From positions 186,001 through 250,000 of IMG/VR virus record IMGVR_UViG_3300030085_002431: a DNA stretch of 64,000 bases. One strand, written 5' to 3'. Numbering within the stretch: the stretch's first letter is position 1; each line of letters starts with the position of its first letter. Under the pieces are notes generated by a model. The model was not told where the DNA came from, searched no databases, and saw only the letters and a program-made list of their open reading frames with translations. Below are positions 8,265 to 62,839 of the stretch, one piece after another. Position numbers and translations under genes: made by a program.

Positions 8265-10766
8265 ATGTCCGACTATTTAAGTAAAAGAGTAAAGAAGGTA
8301 TTTGGGGAGGGTCTCTCCAACTCTCGTTATGATTACTTGTCACTAGAACAAGCAGAACCTGACCTCGGAAATCCACTGGTTGGACCTTCTTCCATTGGTG
8401 CAAAACCAAACCCAACAGGGGTAGCATATATTCTTGCATCCTTTGCAACAACATCAAAGGCAGATAGATACTGGGTTCCACCATCGGAACTACAGGGTCT
8501 TGGTCTTGGATTGATTCCTGGTGCTTTCACAATTAGAGATGAAGGTGCTACAGTTGGTACTGCAAACAGTTTTACTACTCTAAATTTTGTCGGACAAGAT
8601 GTCGATTTAGATTATGTTGGACCGAATCCAGATGAGCAAACTGGTATTGCAACAGTAAGAATTAATTCCAAAGGTAGAGGAGTTATTAGTGCTATTCAAT
8701 ACCATAGTTCAACAACTCTAACCGATGGTGCTCCAGACTTTGTTTATGATGAGAATACAAACTCAGTTGGTATTGGAACAACTACACCAATTGTTACTCT
8801 GGATGTAAGAGGTACAGCATCCATAAGTGGGATAAGCACATTTAAATCTAATGTTAATTTAGATGATAACACTTCTTTAAGTATTGGAGTTAGTAGTGAT
8901 TTTACTATCACTCATGATGGAACAGATACAAATATTGTAAGTAATACTGGTAAGTTAAATCTAGACTCAGATGATTTAAATATTGCTGCAACTAGGACAG
9001 GTAAAGAATATATTACTGCTGTTGATGGAGCAGCAGTCTCCATTTTCCATAATGGTTTAAATGACACTGGTGCTGGTTCTACTCATAAGAGAATAGAAAC
9101 AACCAGATATGGAACTACATTTAAAGGTAGTGGCGTATTTGAAGAAGGACTTCACGTTGTAGATGATAAAGCAATTAGAGTTGGTACAGGAACTGACTTA
9201 ACCATCTACCATGACGGAACAGATACTTATATTGATAATGAAGAAGGTTCTCTCTATATTAGAGATACTTCCAATGGTGATGTTCGTATCCAAGCAAATT
9301 CTGGTGAAGACTCTGCTATCTTTAACGATGATGGTTCAGTAGAACTATACCATGATAATGTTAAGAAGTTTGAGACTACTGGTATTGGTGCAACTGTATA
9401 TGGTACGTTAGAATCAACGGCAGTAGATACAGAAACAGTCTCTGCTACTACTGTAAATTCATCTGATATCTTTGTATCTGGTCTTACGACTACTACAGAC
9501 TTTAGAACTAAGTATGCTAATGTATCCACAGCAGGTACAATTACAAACTTCTTTGCAACTCATGCAAATGTTGCGGGACTGACTACAACTACCAGATTTT
9601 ACTCTGGTAAGGCATCTATTGGTTCAACCCTCACTGCTACTCATATTGGTATAAACACAGAACCAGAATATCCACTCGATGTCAATGGTGAAGCAAGATT
9701 TGGAGATTTGATTTATGTTAGTAATGGAACTGGTATCACTGGAGAAGTACTCCTTTCTCAAGGAGGTAGTAACCCACCTGTATGGGGTCCTCCAACTAAC
9801 GTTACGGTTGGTTCTGCCCAGTCTGTTTACATCGATGACGTAACTGCTAACCAGACACATTTTCTCACATTCTCTACAGAGGCAGACGATACTGGATACA
9901 TCAAAGTAGATACAGAAGGTCTGTTCTACAATCCTTCATCAAATACACTTGGTATTGGTAGCACTGCTAATCATACCCTGGATGTTCTAGGTGATATTAA
10001 CTTTACTGGAACTCTTCTTCAAAATGGTGAACTTGGTGTATTCTCTCGATGGACTATCGATGATGTATCACAAGATATTTTCCGTTTTGCAGGAAATATT
10101 GGTATTGGAACAAGTACTCTAAGTCATAAGTTCACAGTTCTTGGTGATACTTTACTAGAAGGTGATACAACAATCCGTGGACAGATTGCAAATGGTCTGA
10201 CAGTATCTGGTATTGCAACTATTGACCAGTTCACTTCTGCGGATAGTAATATTGACCTCTTAACTGTAGGTGCGGGTGGAACTGTATTGACTGCAAGTGC
10301 TGATGGCACTGTAGCAGTTGGTATTGGAACCACAACTGCATCTCTAACAGTAGTTGGTGAAACTATCCTTGATGGTGTTACCCACTTTGACGGAACAATC
10401 ACCGAAAAGATTCATAATACTTATGGAACTGATATTCCATCTACAGGTGGAAAGATGACTCTAGATGTCAACACAGGAACAGTGGTTGTTGGAGTTCTCA
10501 CTGAGGCAGTAGGTGAGTGGGCATTTACTGGTGTGGACACTAGTGGTCCAAAAGCAACAACAATGACTCTAATTATTGACTCCGACTCACTACTTGGATA
10601 TGCAGAAACATGTAGTGTAAACGGTGGTGCTCCATTCGGTGTACGATGGGGTGGTGGTATTGCACCTCTGCCAACTAACAACGAGGATATTATTAGTTTC
10701 ACAATTGCAACCGACTCTAATGGTCAAATAAGAGTCTTCGGTTCCTCCTCACTCAACTTTAGCTGA
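8265..10766 (+). CDS. Tail fibre protein
   Basis: 833 aa; repeated VGIGT, LDV.G and DLTIYHDGTD modules. Confidence 0.75.
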   Translation: MSDYLSKRVKKVFGEGLSNSRYDYLSLEQAEPDLGNPLVGPSSIGAKPNPTGVAYILASFATTSKADRYWVPPSELQGLGLGLIPGAFTIRDEGATVGTANSFTTLNFVGQDVDLDYVGPNPDEQTGIATVRINSKGRGVISAIQYHSSTTLTDGAPDFVYDENTNSVGIGTTTPIVTLDVRGTASISGISTFKSNVNLDDNTSLSIGVSSDFTITHDGTDTNIVSNTGKLNLDSDDLNIAATRTGKEYITAVDGAAVSIFHNGLNDTGAGSTHKRIETTRYGTTFKGSGVFEEGLHVVDDKAIRVGTGTDLTIYHDGTDTYIDNEEGSLYIRDTSNGDVRIQANSGEDSAIFNDDGSVELYHDNVKKFETTGIGATVYGTLESTAVDTETVSATTVNSSDIFVSGLTTTTDFRTKYANVSTAGTITNFFATHANVAGLTTTTRFYSGKASIGSTLTATHIGINTEPEYPLDVNGEARFGDLIYVSNGTGITGEVLLSQGGSNPPVWGPPTNVTVGSAQSVYIDDVTANQTHFLTFSTEADDTGYIKVDTEGLFYNPSSNTLGIGSTANHTLDVLGDINFTGTLLQNGELGVFSRWTIDDVSQDIFRFAGNIGIGTSTLSHKFTVLGDTLLEGDTTIRGQIANGLTVSGIATIDQFTSADSNIDLLTVGAGGTVLTASADGTVAVGIGTTTASLTVVGETILDGVTHFDGTITEKIHNTYGTDIPSTGGKMTLDVNTGTVVVGVLTEAVGEWAFTGVDTSGPKATTMTLIIDSDSLLGYAETCSVNGGAPFGVRWGGGIAPLPTNNEDIISFTIATDSNGQIRVFGSSSLNFS

Positions 10767-43846: not shown

Positions 43847-44302
43847 ATGAAAATAGAAGTAGAAGGTTCTCCTGTTCTCAGAAAGAAATCAAAAAGAGTT
43901 TCAAATATAAACAACGATATCCGAAAGTTTTGTGCTGAGATGGCACAGACAATGAGAGATGCAAAGGGTATTGGAATTTCAGCACCCCAGGTGGGGGTAT
44001 CTAAACGCATCATAATTGTTAATGATGGAGGAAATGATTGGGTATTGATTAACCCAGAAATTATTTGGGATGATGGTAAAAGAGTTTCTTTTAATGAGGG
44101 TTGTTTAAGTGTTCCTGGTGAATATGCAGATATTCTCAGACCAGACAGGATTAGGGTGAAATATAGAGAACTATCTGGGAGACCTCAGACTGTAGACTTA
44201 GACGGTTTATTGTCAAGGATAGTGCAACATGAAATTGACCACTTAAATGGCATTCTTTTCACAGATTACTTGACTGATAGAGGAAGTGCGATTACTATAT
44301 AA
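43847..44302 (+). CDS. def: Peptide deformylase
   Basis: GIGISAPQVG, EGCLS, QHEIDHLNG; short C-terminus. Confidence 0.95.
   Translation: MKIEVEGSPVLRKKSKRVSNINNDIRKFCAEMAQTMRDAKGIGISAPQVGVSKRIIIVNDGGNDWVLINPEIIWDDGKRVSFNEGCLSVPGEYADILRPDRIRVKYRELSGRPQTVDLDGLLSRIVQHEIDHLNGILFTDYLTDRGSAITI
44270..44298 (+). promoter_or_regulatory. sigma70-type promoter for tmRNA (inside def 3' end)
   Basis: TTGACT-17-TACTAT. Confidence 0.7.
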
Positions 44303-44304
44303 AG

Positions 44305-44545
44305 TGTTCAAGAGGTTGCGAAGTCTGTTGTTTTGGACAGGGGTTCGATTCCCCTCACCTCCATTCATGGGGGTGCCATGGTTTCGACAGGGCAAAAAGG
44401 TCGTAATTGTTGACGGGACATAAACATAGATGCAAACACATCTGAAACCGCAGCAAATAACATTGTTGCATTCTCCCGCAGCACCGTTGCTGCCTGAATG
44501 GGGGATGGGGGATAAGTCTTCCTTCTAATCCAATAGACTCTTGGG
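44305..44545 (+). ncRNA. ssrA: Circularly permuted (two-piece) tmRNA, cyanobacterial type
   Basis: T arm GGGGTTCGATTCCCC plus CACCTCCA (to 44363) precedes the 5' piece GGGGGTG..GGTTTCGAC (from 44369); G3:U70; tag ORF 44453-44497 ANNIVAFSRSTVAA*. Confidence 0.9.
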
Positions 44546-44565
44546 GGTGAGATGCCCCTCTTTTT
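44543..44565 (+). terminator. Intrinsic terminator after tmRNA
   Basis: GGGGGT-gaga-TGCCCCT followed by CTTTTT. Confidence 0.7.
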
Positions 44566-44606
44566 GTATAAATACTCCAGAGTTAATTAAACTTAGGATA
44601 CTTTTT

Positions 44607-59528: not shown

Positions 59529-60020
59529 ATGAATCAAGAAATTAAAGTCTATGATGATTTTCTGAGTAAAGAAGATCATGATAGACTTGTTCATTTATTT
59601 TCTGGATTAGGTGAGTATTCTAAATTCCCATGGGAATGTGTGGATAATGATAGACCAAATCTAATTAAATTTACTCATGATTTTTGGTCTCATGGTCCGA
59701 TGGGTAATTATAGTGAATGGATTGGACCTCTTACATATGCGTTAGATATTAAATCTTTAGTGTTTGCTTTTGCTTCCTTATATCCAAAAGGTAGTGAACT
59801 TGTTGAATTTGATTATCATGTAGATATTGATTTTGCATGTACGACTTGTGTGTATTATGTAAACACATGCGATGGATATACTAAATTTGAAGATTGTGGA
59901 ACTGTGGTAGATAGTGTTGCCAATAGATGTTTAGTTTTTCCGAGTCAATTAAGGCACACAGGTACAAATGTGACTGATACTAATAAACGGTTAATCATCA
60001 ATATGAATTTCTTCAACTAA
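59529..60020 (+). CDS. 2OG-Fe(II) oxygenase
   Basis: YDDFL; HVD...YYVNT.DGYT.F....V.SVANR...F.....H.GT..T....R..IN.NF. Confidence 0.85.
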   Translation: MNQEIKVYDDFLSKEDHDRLVHLFSGLGEYSKFPWECVDNDRPNLIKFTHDFWSHGPMGNYSEWIGPLTYALDIKSLVFAFASLYPKGSELVEFDYHVDIDFACTTCVYYVNTCDGYTKFEDCGTVVDSVANRCLVFPSQLRHTGTNVTDTNKRLIINMNFFN

Positions 60021-60487
60021 TGAGTGATATATTATTATTAACACCATCAAGACATTCTTTCAGCACGGATGATAATGATTATTGCTTTATTTTTGTGCAT
60101 GACTTAGCAATCAAGGCATCACCATCACATCTGAAAGAAGTAAATTTTGATGATATAGAATATGCTGGTGCGGAGTATTATCCACAACGAGCAGGATGGA
60201 ATTGCCAATGTTGTAGTGGGAAGAAATATGCAAATGCAAATATCTATTTTCCAGGATTATTAGTTGAAGGATTAAGTAAAAAATCAAAATATAAGTTAAT
60301 TGATGGTCGGCACAGATTAGATAAGATGAGGTTTAATGGCATGACCAAATCAAAGTTTTATGTGTTTGATTATAGTGAGGTGAAGGAGTTAATTTATCAC
60401 TGTAATACACAAGATGAAAAGGATGAAATACTGAATAACGTTGCGGAGGAATGTATGCACCTGAGAGACACCATGGACCTTCTCTAA
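60020..60487 (+). CDS. ParB/Srx-like domain protein
   Basis: P.L.......Y.LIDGRHRL. Confidence 0.55.
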   Translation: MSDILLLTPSRHSFSTDDNDYCFIFVHDLAIKASPSHLKEVNFDDIEYAGAEYYPQRAGWNCQCCSGKKYANANIYFPGLLVEGLSKKSKYKLIDGRHRLDKMRFNGMTKSKFYVFDYSEVKELIYHCNTQDEKDEILNNVAEECMHLRDTMDLL

Positions 60488-61107: not shown

Positions 61108-61380
61108 ATGCTTAAGGCAATTACATCACTATTACTATCAGTTACCTTATGGGTACAAGTTCCACAATGGAATGATGATTGGAGTAATTGTGCAGTAGAT
61201 GTTCCTGACACTAGTTGTCATTGGTACATTGTAAATGCCGATAATACTTTTGGTGAAGGATTCGATTGGGAAACTGCACCATGGTATTCGATTGAAGGAT
61301 TACAAGACATTGCTAATCTTCATGATGAGGTAATTAGTAATGGTCACACTTATACAGTTGAAGCATTACAAAATCAATGA
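61108..61380 (+). CDS. Secreted/membrane-anchored hypothetical protein
   Basis: N-terminal hydrophobic stretch; WVQVPQW.DDW..CAVDVPD..CHWY. Confidence 0.65.
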   Translation: MLKAITSLLLSVTLWVQVPQWNDDWSNCAVDVPDTSCHWYIVNADNTFGEGFDWETAPWYSIEGLQDIANLHDEVISNGHTYTVEALQNQ

Positions 61381-61682
61381 CGAAAAGGGTAAAGGATTTA
61401 ATTAGTGAACTCGAACTATTAAATCCGAATGAATCTATCTTTGCTTTATATTATACAAAGGAGGATGTAAAACAATTAGATTACTATTGTACTGATTGTT
61501 ATCCTTATACTGATGAACTAGCAGAGAAGACAATTACTAAACTAACTGAAGATGGTGATGTAAAGAATACAGTAGACAAGTTAGTTACTAATACAATGAG
61601 AGATGATACTAGTTATCTCGTACAAGAAGAATGTAGATTAGATAGTATTGACAAGGTATTAAATGACTCTCCGAGTTACTAA
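61377..61682 (+). CDS. Hypothetical protein
   Basis: ATGA overlap. Confidence 0.55.
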   Translation: MTKRVKDLISELELLNPNESIFALYYTKEDVKQLDYYCTDCYPYTDELAEKTITKLTEDGDVKNTVDKLVTNTMRDDTSYLVQEECRLDSIDKVLNDSPSY

Positions 61683-61684
61683 AA

Positions 61685-62680
61685 AGTGCATCTGTGGAAA
61701 AACTTGTGGAAAAACAATCATTAAATAAATGGTTAAAAAAACATAGTTGCGTGTTTTATGTTTTCCACAGAAGGTGTTGAAAAAGTATATAAATACCCTG
61801 TTTTATCTTCGTTATTATGTTCTAAACCCCTCTGGTTATTGTTATCTAAGACCGCAGTATATCATGAGTTGACAAAAAAGTCAAGAAAATTTCTGAAACT
61901 TTTTGAGTCTCACACATATTATTCGTCTGATATAAGACTCAACAAAACTGTAAGATTTTATGAGTCCTCTGAGTCTCACTGATTCGTCCATTCTTATGCG
62001 AAACTCACTGGTCTCAGAGAACTTATGAGTCTCAGACCACTCGAAAATTCGTCCACTGGACACAGTAGTCTCATTGTTTTGCGTGTAGACTACTAGGGTG
62101 GTTTTGAGGGAGGGAAGTATTACACAGCACTATGTGATAATAATTACACAGTGAGTTTGTATTAGTTTTCCACAGGCAAAGTATTAGTTATCCACAGACC
62201 CTGTGGAAAAGTATTATAAACCTGTGGAAAACTTTATACCTGGGGGAGGGGTTTATATTACTAATACACAGTGAGTTTCTGATTGTTTATAAACACCAGT
62301 ACTACTCACAAACACTCCGAGGGTTTCTAATACTTTACAGATTGCCCTTCGTGTATTATAATAAAACAGTGTTGTGTAATTATAATTAAGTAGTACTGTT
62401 TAATTCTTATACCCACGGGGGGGTTATTAATAACAATTACTTAGTGAGTTCGTTATTGTTATTATACAGCACTAAATGACAGTAACCCTCGGGGGGGTTA
62501 GGTTTTTTATAAAAACCGATGGGTCCCCCTAACCTACAAAAGTATGCATCCACGAGACCTTTACCCCGCATATAAAAATTTTTCCGAGGGGAAAAACGGG
62601 TCTCCGAGGTCCGTTCAAGAAAAAAAATTCCGAGGGGAAAAAATAGGTTAAAAACCCTGTGAGTGCTATATAACGGAGAA
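61685..62680. other. Gene-free repeat-rich region, candidate replication origin with DnaA-box cluster
   Basis: TT(A/T)TCCACA or its complement at 61693, 61705, 61761, 62166, 62188, 62202, 62223; GAGTCTCA repeats; AT-rich tracts. Confidence 0.6.
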
Positions 62681-62695
62681 TAAAAATTTCTAAGA

Positions 62696-62839
62696 ATGAC
62701 CGAAGAAGAGAAGGAGTTACTCATCGAGTGCATTCAATTCCGTTTACAGCACGACAAGTCTTTAAATAGTAATGAAGTATTACGTGAAGATTTGGAAGAA
62801 TTGCTCTTTAAAGTAGAGGATATTGATGACTACGTATGA
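62696..62839 (+). CDS. Small hypothetical protein
   Basis: MTEEEKELLIECIQFR; 47 aa. Confidence 0.5.
   Translation: MTEEEKELLIECIQFRLQHDKSLNSNEVLREDLEELLFKVEDIDDYV

Follow-up and report, generated by a model that had tools for sequence, protein, structure and literature searches.

A conserved, phased array of host-type DnaA-box motifs in a gene-free region of a T4-like cyanophage

A gene-free stretch of about 1 kb in a T4-like cyanomyovirus carries a conserved, phased array of the binding motif of the host replication initiator DnaA, a feature that is not expected for T4-type phages but is shared by many marine cyanomyoviruses. The array was found in a 64-kb window of DNA (64,000 nucleotides, positions 186,001 to 250,000 of IMG/VR record IMGVR_UViG_3300030085_002431), and most likely marks a replication origin or control region assisted by DnaA, although binding of DnaA is itself inferred from sequence alone. 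The initial annotation had reported seven perfect boxes and one near-match in two sub-clusters, with boxes in both orientations and AT-rich tracts beside them, and this observation proved correct in all its coordinates. The phage is assigned to the T4-like cyanomyoviruses because its relatives carry gp25 and gp6 just downstream.

The gap that holds the whole module extends over 1013 nt (61683-62695), between an ORF at 61377-61682 and an ORF at 62696-62839. Small ORFs inside the gap are not conserved: among relatives retrieved through a neighbouring protein (here L075 to L078), L078 has a 1-nt insertion right after the ATG of the 74-aa ORF, and L077 has an insertion of ~300 nt. Cluster 1 starts with two exact TTTTCCACA boxes on the minus strand, at 61693-61701 and, 12 nt further on, at 61705-61713 (read as TGTGGAAAA on the given strand), followed by an exact TTTTCCACA on the plus strand at 61761-61769, which forms a head-to-head pair, with a 5-nt spacer, with the near-match at 61775-61783 (TGTTGAAAA, or TTTTCAACA as a box on the minus strand). 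Cluster 2 comprises an exact TTTTCCACA at 62166-62174 (plus strand), the variant TTATCCACA 22 nt later at 62188-62196 (plus strand), an exact box on the minus strand at 62202-62210, head-to-head with the preceding one across a 5-nt spacer, and a last exact box on the minus strand, 21 nt further, at 62223-62231 (both TGTGGAAAA as read). No other exact TTTTCCACA is present in the window. The degenerate consensus TTWTNCACA is not enriched in the window (12 found, 12.1 expected), whereas the strict forms are: per 64 kb, 0.8 exact TTTTCCACA and 1.6 TTWTCCACA are expected for independent bases, against 6 and 9 observed, of which 7 lie inside 540 nt. Since the largest cluster in 300 Markov simulations was 2 and the Poisson estimate is about 1e-15, chance is rejected as an explanation.

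The boxes are under purifying selection. In relatives that were not selected for boxes, 60 of 72 box columns (83%) are invariant, against 454 of 941 other gap columns (48%), a difference reached by only 3 of 20000 random placements; the corresponding figure in the short, poorly aligned tail of the upstream ORF is 16%. The first box, at 61693, is present in 4 of 5 distinct relatives and absent in L078. The boxes at 61761, 62166, 62202 and 62223 have 9 of 9 invariant columns, and those at 61775 and 62188 have 8 of 9; the near-match at 61775 is a perfect TGTGGAAAA in L078, and the variant at 62188 is TTTTCCACA in L075 and L077. That the motif might be equally frequent elsewhere, or the boxes not conserved in related phages, had been named beforehand as grounds for rejection, and neither was found to be the case. 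A BLAST search of the gap against 50,697 phage records, a collection that does not include the phage of the window, returned no match, and no Rfam family matched the gap at gathering or at E-value thresholds.

Our survey shows in addition that the array is not peculiar to this phage, a point missed by the initial annotation, but is a widespread though patchy feature of cyanomyoviruses. Whereas an IMG/VR scan for a bare palindrome was too unspecific, the array itself recurs in more than 100 IMG/VR contigs with at least 17 unrelated types of flanking sequence (flank families). Direct boxes are 11-12 or 21-22 nt apart, that is one or two helical turns, and the head-to-head pair has a spacer of 4-5 nt, although much wider ranges were allowed in the search; in a sister family the box corresponding to that at 62223 is flipped. 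In 74 of 121 loci the array lies upstream of the same module, consisting of a glycosyltransferase-like gene, gp25 and gp6 in the same order. It is present in the isolates S-PM2, S-RIM32, P-TIM68, S-BM3 and S-SM2, and in the complete S-PM2 genome (LN828717) the only cluster is at 9689-9722. In contrast, only 7-8 of 36 unselected loci with the glycosyltransferase-like gene (about 20%) have it within 2.5-7 kb upstream, and P-SSM2, S-SSM7, ACG-2014f, Sf-FS3, S-CAM9 and Bellamy lack it there, so that it cannot be the universal origin of these phages.

The motif behaves like a DnaA box. Six of the seven strict boxes are TTTTCCACA, the form of the cyanobacterial host clade (PMC4009838, PMC2275245), as the initial annotation had stated; position 3 is T in 87% of the boxes across phage loci that were not forced by the search, and one-mismatch variants differ only at positions 1, 2, 3 or 5 and never at 6-9. 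Bacterial chromosomal clusters show the same 21-22 nt phasing. Three cyanobacterial chromosome clusters from a scan of bacterial genomes of mixed phyla, none of them next to dnaN, have the same box order, with a 6-10 nt head-to-head spacer and 21-22 nt to the next box.

Around the boxes lie further elements resembling those of origins. An AT-rich tract enclosed by cluster 1 (61709-61748), a candidate unwinding element whose sequence block is conserved in relatives, is among the least stable 1% of 40-mers of the window by nearest-neighbour stability, and 62354-62393 is among the least stable 0.11%. However, results across the other flank families are mixed: adjacent instability is strong in only some of them, the neighbouring DNA is not unusually unstable in several, and a search for a universal AT-rich motif next to the arrays found none. 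A leftward sigma-70-like promoter (61856-61884, minus strand; TTGACT-17-TATACT, TG-extended), antisense to all genes, reads into cluster 1 and its AT-rich tract, and in relatives its hexamers are kept or improved (TATAAT in L075, TTGACA in L077 and L078) while the spacer varies. A rightward sigma-70-like promoter (62334-62362, plus strand; TTTACA-17-TATAAT, 11/12) overlaps the least stable DNA of the window, and both hexamers are kept in L075 (TTGACA / TATAAT) despite changes in the spacer. Promoters reading into the boxes are also predicted in S-BM3 and P-TIM68, although promoter scans were not enriched over shuffled sequences. Between the two clusters (61905-62074, plus strand) are iteron-like repeats, comprising 3 of the 5 GAGTCTCA and both ATTCGTCC of the window, all on one strand; they are locally enriched but irregularly spaced, their positions shift in L075 although the motifs are kept, and L077 has the module duplicated. 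Iteron-like repeats accompany the array in S-PM2 and S-BM3 as well, and an unrelated Butyrivibrio phage has the layout boxes, iterons, boxes, AT-rich DNA. GC skew showed no inflection, but rises monotonically in the window and across the whole S-PM2 genome because nearly all genes share one strand, which makes this test uninformative here.

We favor, tentatively and with a probability of about 0.42, the view that the gap is a cis-acting module in which two phased arrays of the host's DnaA box act as a replication origin. In this view, host DnaA in its ATP form would bind the high-affinity boxes early in infection, oligomerise along the phased sites and, together with transcription from the flanking host-type promoters, above all the leftward one, open the adjacent unstable DNA. 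The phage's own helicase loader, helicase and primase (gp59, gp41, gp61) would then assemble there for the first, origin-dependent rounds of replication, before recombination-dependent replication takes over, so that DnaA boxes would take the role that the MotA-dependent middle promoter plays at T4 oriF and oriG. The motif, its clustering, conservation and phasing, its single syntenic locus, and the promoters and unstable DNA at the level of sequence have been demonstrated here, whereas binding of DnaA, opening of the DNA and the start of replication at this site are inferences. The absence, in our search, of any phage protein family that accompanies the array across flank families points to a host factor. 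T4-type phages, on the other hand, are not known to need DnaA, which is not mentioned in PMC3016281. The interpretation of the initial annotation, either a phage origin assisted by host DnaA or an oriC/datA-like decoy that shuts down host initiation, is partly supported: sequence alone cannot choose between the two, but the surrounding anatomy, with conserved promoters firing into the boxes, very unstable DNA, iteron-like repeats and one cluster per genome at a syntenic site, leans towards an origin-like or transcription-coupled module rather than a pure decoy.

The array shares with bacterial oriC regions, in particular cyanobacterial oriC next to dnaN (PMC4009838, PMC4674748), the 9-mer variant, several boxes in both orientations, direct boxes spaced by whole helical turns and adjacent easily melted DNA, but it sits in a lytic T4-like phage with no dnaA or dnaN nearby, no skew switch is seen, and it has only 7-8 boxes in two clusters. 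In iteron-type origins that use host DnaA as a helper (P1 oriR, F oriS, RK2 oriV, pSC101), DnaA boxes likewise flank short direct repeats and an AT-rich region, and RK2 oriV has inverted box pairs; however, the repeats described here are irregular, with variable spacing, the phage brings its own replisome, and no Rep, DnaA, HTH or other replication or DNA-binding domain was found in Pfam and PHROGs scans of ten flanking ORFs. T4 origins consist of a promoter and an AT-rich unwinding element, with an R-loop primer at oriF and oriG, and oriE has an early promoter and iterons (PMC3016281). The leftward promoter of the window, whose predicted transcript would run into 61748-61709, has this layout at the sequence level, analogous layouts occur in S-BM3 and P-TIM68, and the array lies in or near a late-gene region, upstream of gp25; T4 oriF lies in uvsY next to gene 25, a parallel that is no more than a lead. 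T4 origins nevertheless have no DnaA boxes and use MotA-dependent promoters, whereas cyanomyoviruses are reported to lack MotA and the promoters here look like plain host sigma-70 promoters. With E. coli datA the array has in common a cluster of high-affinity-type boxes outside oriC, but datA acts on the host's own initiation cycle and needs IHF, and nothing here beyond the boxes themselves indicates titration.

Among the alternatives, which we consider unlikely but which are not excluded, the one that survives best is a transcription switch responsive to DnaA, in which DnaA bound 35-120 nt downstream of host-type promoters would block, terminate or tune early transcripts at the border between the early hypervariable region and the late baseplate genes, so that phage gene expression would read the host's replication or energy state. 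In its favor, sigma-70-like promoters read into the boxes in the window (the leftward promoter), in S-BM3 (TTGACA-17-TAGACT, boxes from about +35) and in P-TIM68, TTGACA-containing 8-mers are the words most often shared among flank families, and an optional regulatory module would fit the patchy distribution. In addition, TATAAATA (61788-61795, plus strand), a match to the T4 late-promoter consensus, follows the cluster-1 pair by 4 nt; it is one of 4 in the window, all on the plus strand, and is invariant in relatives. Nevertheless, the leftward promoter has no gene to express, as no minus-strand ORF lies downstream of it, the position of the boxes relative to promoters is not constant, and four to eight phased boxes are more than a simple operator needs.

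Somewhat less likely, the array could be an operator for a phage-encoded protein whose site coincides with, or was derived from, the DnaA box. The conserved motif extends beyond the 9-mer, as AG-TTTTCCACA-G(G), one relative (L324) has changed all five boxes in concert to TTCTCCACA, a variant also found in S-SM2, as would fit a co-evolving binder or a hairpin, and the head-to-head spacing of 13-14 nt start-to-start is specific to the phage arrays and is not the commonest in bacteria. However, an exact match to the host-clade box in 17 unrelated flank contexts is very unlikely by coincidence, variation is confined to four positions, of which 3 and 5 are the degenerate ones of the consensus, and neither a co-occurring protein family nor, in the neighbouring genes scanned, a DNA-binding domain was found. 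A datA-like sink, in which the replicating phage genome would multiply high-affinity boxes, titrate host DnaA and stop new rounds of host chromosome replication, is more doubtful still. Seven to eight high-affinity-type boxes per genome copy, and the patchy distribution expected of an accessory host-takeover function, would agree with it, but a sink needs no fixed phasing, no neighbouring promoters or unstable DNA and no fixed genomic position, all of which are conserved, S-PM2 and P-TIM68 with only 2-3 boxes would be weak sinks, and cyanomyoviruses degrade host DNA anyway. A purely structural element, a cruciform or an RNA hairpin or terminator without any role for DnaA, is very unlikely, for although the four boxes of cluster 2 form an imperfect 70-nt palindrome (62164-62233; dG -32.4 kcal/mol, z -7.3) and both outer arms changed together in L324 and stay complementary, the stems never covary across 17 flank families and are always the same 9-mer, tandem direct boxes at 11 or 22 nt cannot pair with each other, the boxes stay intact where a sister family flips box 4 and where L075 breaks the outer stem without compensation, and no U-tract follows the hairpin.

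T4-like cyanophages are among the most abundant viruses in the sea, yet on the start of their replication a review reports only that a single theta origin was predicted for Syn9 (PMC2984593). In the literature searched, no paper links DnaA boxes to cyanophages or T4-like phages, and Sullivan 2010 searched only late, Pho and NtcA motifs, though an earlier mention in Weigele 2007 (Syn9 origin prediction) or Mann 2005 (S-PM2 genome) cannot be excluded. The array provides a concrete, mutable site in cultured isolates for asking whether these phages recruit the host initiator, how their replication is coupled to host physiology and whether host initiation is affected. A more far-reaching possibility, which we regard as unlikely but not excluded, is that many T4-like cyanophages have replaced the MotA-type origin trigger of T4 by the host initiator. 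Phage replication would then depend on the host's DnaA-ATP level, and so on light, energy and cell-cycle state, providing a molecular link to the light and diel dependence of cyanophage replication, and exchange of the module among phages would explain its patchy, all-or-none distribution. The analysis also shows that the large gene-free gaps in the hypervariable region of these genomes are functional DNA, conserved about as strongly as the genes around them. Further along the gap of the window, a terminator-like hairpin followed by a T-run (62483-62510, plus strand; fold z -2.9) delimits, together with the promoter at 62334, a possible RNA of ~140 nt, and L075 has a different hairpin at the same place.

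All coordinates in the initial annotation, which had reported a cluster of DnaA boxes in a gene-free region of a T4-like phage, were found to be right, and its observation stands. Exact copies of TTTTCCACA, on either strand, start at 61693, 61705, 61761, 62166, 62202 and 62223, TTATCCACA starts at 62188, and the one-mismatch site TTTTCAACA is located at 61775. These are the only exact TTTTCCACA in the 64-kb window, where composition predicts 0.8. For TT(A/T)TCCACA the window holds 9 copies against 1.6 expected, of which 7 lie within 540 nt; the largest cluster in 300 first-order Markov simulations was 2, and a Poisson estimate is about 1e-15. Since the loose consensus TTWTNCACA is not enriched in the window as a whole (12 found, 12.1 expected), the signal is specific to the strict box. 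Two isolated TTATCCACA words, at 59639-59647 (- strand) and 60178-60186 (+ strand), lie inside coding ORFs 2 kb upstream of the gap and are also present in the closest relatives, but they are single and within genes, so they are probably due to chance. The boxes themselves lie in a 1013-nt gap (61683-62695) between two + strand ORFs, and the small ORFs inside the gap are broken by indels in relatives.

The window is part of a ~250-kb T4-like cyanomyovirus (IMG/VR contig 3300030085_002431). It carries cobS-like and other cyanomyovirus genes, ten tRNA genes (12084-48467) and a cyanobacterial-type (permuted) tmRNA (44274-44588) with tag peptide ANTSETAANNIVAFSRSTVAA, the tRNA and tmRNA genes all being on the + strand. 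The gap is followed by two small ORFs and a gene for a 250-aa glycosyltransferase-like protein (phrog_1574), after which, in relatives, come the baseplate genes gp25 and gp6. All genes in this region are on the + strand, and GC skew rises steadily through the site.

Eight IMG/VR loci, representing five distinct sequences, were retrieved through the 101-aa protein encoded upstream of the gap. Although they were therefore not selected for boxes, all of them keep the boxes. In the alignment, 60 of 72 box columns are invariant, against 454 of 941 other gap columns, and only 3 of 20000 random placements of eight 9-nt blocks do as well; the six right-hand boxes score 52 of 54. The near-match at 61775 is a perfect box in the most distant of these relatives, L078, which on the other hand lacks the two left-most boxes, while TTATCCACA at 62188 is TTTTCCACA in two others, L075 and L077. 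The gap as a whole is strongly conserved.

A scan of IMG/VR for TTTTCCACA, followed by 8-30 nt, TTWTCCACA, 1-10 nt and TGTGGAAAA, returned 113 stretches, giving 102 distinct flanks that fall into 17 flank families once the boxes are masked. Spacing is tightly constrained despite the wide ranges allowed: the two direct boxes are separated by 12-13 nt in 79 of 102, and the head-to-head pair by 4-5 nt in 94 of 102. When all neighbouring boxes are counted, same-orientation start-to-start distances peak at 11-12 and at 21-22 nt, that is, at one or two helical turns. Bacterial chromosomal clusters retrieved with the same pattern also peak at 21-22 nt, and three cyanobacterial chromosomal clusters show the same order of a box, 6-10 nt, an inverted box, and then 21-22 nt to the next inverted box. 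In 74 of 121 phage loci the retrieved DNA also contains the glycosyltransferase-like gene, gp25 or gp6, always downstream and in the same order, with gp6 identities ranging from 38 to 100%. The array is therefore a syntenic feature of a broad range of T4-like cyanophages.

Among cultured phages, the array is present in S-PM2 (three boxes in a 440-nt gap 7.6 kb upstream of gp25), S-RIM32 (two clusters 1 kb apart), P-TIM68, S-BM3 (a degenerate version) and S-SM2 and, by BLAST only, in DSL-LC03, S-CREM1 and DSL-LC02. It is absent within 4-8 kb upstream of the glycosyltransferase-like gene in P-SSM2, S-SSM7, ACG-2014f, Sf-FS3, S-CAM9 and Bellamy. In an unselected sample of 36 IMG/VR loci with that gene and at least 2.5 kb of upstream sequence, 7 have two or more exact boxes within 120 nt, 8 have three or more boxes with at most one mismatch, and 28 have none at all. 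The element is all-or-none and present in about one fifth, and this patchy distribution means that it cannot be the general origin of cyanomyoviruses. In the complete S-PM2 genome there are 9 exact boxes (4.6 expected), and the only cluster is the array at 9689-9722.

Several lines of evidence bear on whether the motif is a DnaA box. The literature gives TTTTCCACA as the DnaA box of the cyanobacterial phylum, places oriC next to dnaN in Prochlorococcus (PMC4009838, PMC2275245, PMC2836286), and reports DnaA interaction with the predicted oriCs in Cyanothece (PMC4674748). In the phage arrays, position 3 is T in 167 of the 193 boxes that were not forced by the search pattern. Among 27 one-mismatch boxes next to exact ones, the mismatch is at position 1, 2, 3 or 5 and never at 6-9, whereas random one-mismatch words in the window hit positions 6-9 in 12 of 23 cases; this agrees with the consensus TT(A/T)TNCACA at positions 3 and 5 and at the fixed 3' CACA. 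Two features call for caution. The conserved motif extends to AG-TTTTCCACA-G(G), and one relative, L324 (5520-5635), carries the same architecture with all five boxes changed to TTCTCCACA (C at position 3), including the inverted copy and three tandem 11-nt units; S-SM2 also has one TTCTCCACA. The change in L324 could reflect tandem duplication and gene conversion at a tolerant position, a host with another preference, or a co-evolving phage protein. No protein family was found to accompany the array across flank families, and no DNA-binding or initiator domain was found in ten neighbouring ORFs, both of which fit a host-encoded binder.

Within the gap, cluster 1 (61693-61783) consists of two direct boxes 12 nt apart, a 47-nt AT-rich tract, and a head-to-head pair with a 5-nt spacer. 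The most unstable part of the tract, 61709-61748, is in the least stable 1% of 40-mers of the window, and a TATAAATA follows the pair. A leftward sigma-70-like promoter (TTGACT-17-TATACT with TG, 61884 to 61856) points into cluster 1, although it has no ORF to express and all genes run the other way. In relatives its hexamers are kept or improved while the spacer changes, which is the mark of a real promoter; it should be kept in mind, however, that the promoters predicted here are consensus matches that are not enriched over shuffled sequences, and that only their conservation pattern supports them. Between the two clusters lie repeats of GAGTCTCA (3 of the 5 in the window) and ATTCGTCC (both in the window), which keep their motifs but not their positions in L075. 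In L077 a ~300-nt insertion (about 1270-1830 of that locus, against window 61830-61930) duplicates the iteron-like and G-rich module, so that the repeat block expands and contracts.

Cluster 2 (62166-62231) has four boxes in the order > > < <, at 22, 14 and 21 nt start-to-start, which together form a 70-nt imperfect palindrome. Downstream are G-runs and three copies of an ACACAGTGAGTT-containing repeat. More broadly, G-runs (GGGTGGTTTTGAGGGAGGG, GGGGGAGGGG and GGGGGGG twice) at 62096-62116, 62241-62252, 62412-62424 and 62490-62497 are each followed by an AT-rich repeat containing ACACAGTGAGTT or TTAGTGAGTT (repeats at 62137-62167, 62257-62287 and 62430-62460), giving three to four copies of a composite unit, with the box cluster sitting between two of them; G-rich non-template DNA could favour R-loops. 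Further downstream, a rightward sigma-70-like promoter (TTTACA-17-TATAAT, 11/12, 62334-62362) overlaps the least stable DNA of the whole window (62354-62393, 0.11%) and is followed by a terminator-like hairpin at 62483-62510. Together they delimit a possible ~140-nt non-coding RNA, whose fold has a z of -2.9 and for which no Rfam match was found; L075 keeps both promoter hexamers and has a different hairpin at the terminator position. A direct repeat AAAAA(T)TTCCGAGGGGAAAAA, in two copies 46 nt apart (62574-62642), with further CCGAGG copies at 62317 and 62604, lies just upstream of ORF 62696. Similar company is seen elsewhere: S-PM2 has an AT-rich tract and AAATCTCA / TTAAGATTTC repeats, S-BM3 has CTAGTAGA-type repeats, a pair of divergent strong promoters and an AT-rich tract, and P-TIM68 has a TTGACA-17-TAATAT promoter about 115 nt upstream of its pair.

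The most likely mechanism, in our view, is that the arrays bind host DnaA and, with transcription from the flanking host-type promoters, open the adjacent unstable DNA so that the phage replisome can assemble. This would be a DnaA-assisted origin for the first rounds of replication. The logic follows that of T4 oriF and oriG (promoter plus AT-rich unwinding element) and of oriE (early promoter plus iterons) (PMC3016281). It also follows that of plasmid and phage origins in which DnaA boxes are used beside iterons. Such a layout is seen in an unannotated intergenic region of Butyrivibrio virus Bo-Finn (MN882552 14450-14870; 1480-1900 of locus L387), which has tandem TTATCCACA / TTTTCCACA boxes, six copies of a 20-nt iteron (ACATGTTGTATTTTGGAATG), more boxes and an AT-rich tract, and looks like a classic iteron origin. 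What our analysis establishes is the motif, its clustering, the selection on it, its phasing and synteny, a single locus per genome (for this phage, within the 64 kb examined), and promoters and instability at the sequence level, whereas binding, opening and initiation are inferred. The origin reading thus remains tentative, with a probability of about 0.42, while the narrower claim that the boxes are genuine DnaA-binding sites is considered likely. DnaA-box clusters are a familiar feature of origins, but a conserved, phased array in T4-like phages was not found described in the literature searched, although a passing earlier mention cannot be excluded, and that literature attributes no role to DnaA in T4-type replication (PMC3016281). 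The interpretation in the initial annotation, of either a host-DnaA-assisted phage origin or a decoy titrating DnaA, is partly supported.

Other explanations appear less likely. The boxes could mediate DnaA-controlled transcription across the border between early and late genes, which is possible but unlikely. Slightly less probable is a phage-encoded binder, which is kept alive by the extended motif and the L324 variant. A DnaA sink is doubtful, and is disfavoured because phasing, promoters, unstable DNA and position are conserved, and because some phages have only two or three boxes. A purely structural hairpin is very unlikely because the stems never covary, direct repeats cannot pair, a sister family flips box 4, and L075 breaks the outer stem while the boxes stay intact, and chance is excluded.

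A 287-aa ORF lies within about 250 nt of the box array in each of two large phage contigs (284 kb and 205 kb), at L095 1127-1990 (- strand) and L093 2662-3525 (+ strand). The L095 ORF matches GIY-YIG/HNH homing endonuclease families, which is possibly relevant to the patchy spread of the module. The same 41-nt palindrome of DnaA-box-like words was found on many contigs of single Verrucomicrobiota genomes (MAGs CAZMOR01 and CAYMTY01), which suggests a dispersed repeat family built from this motif.
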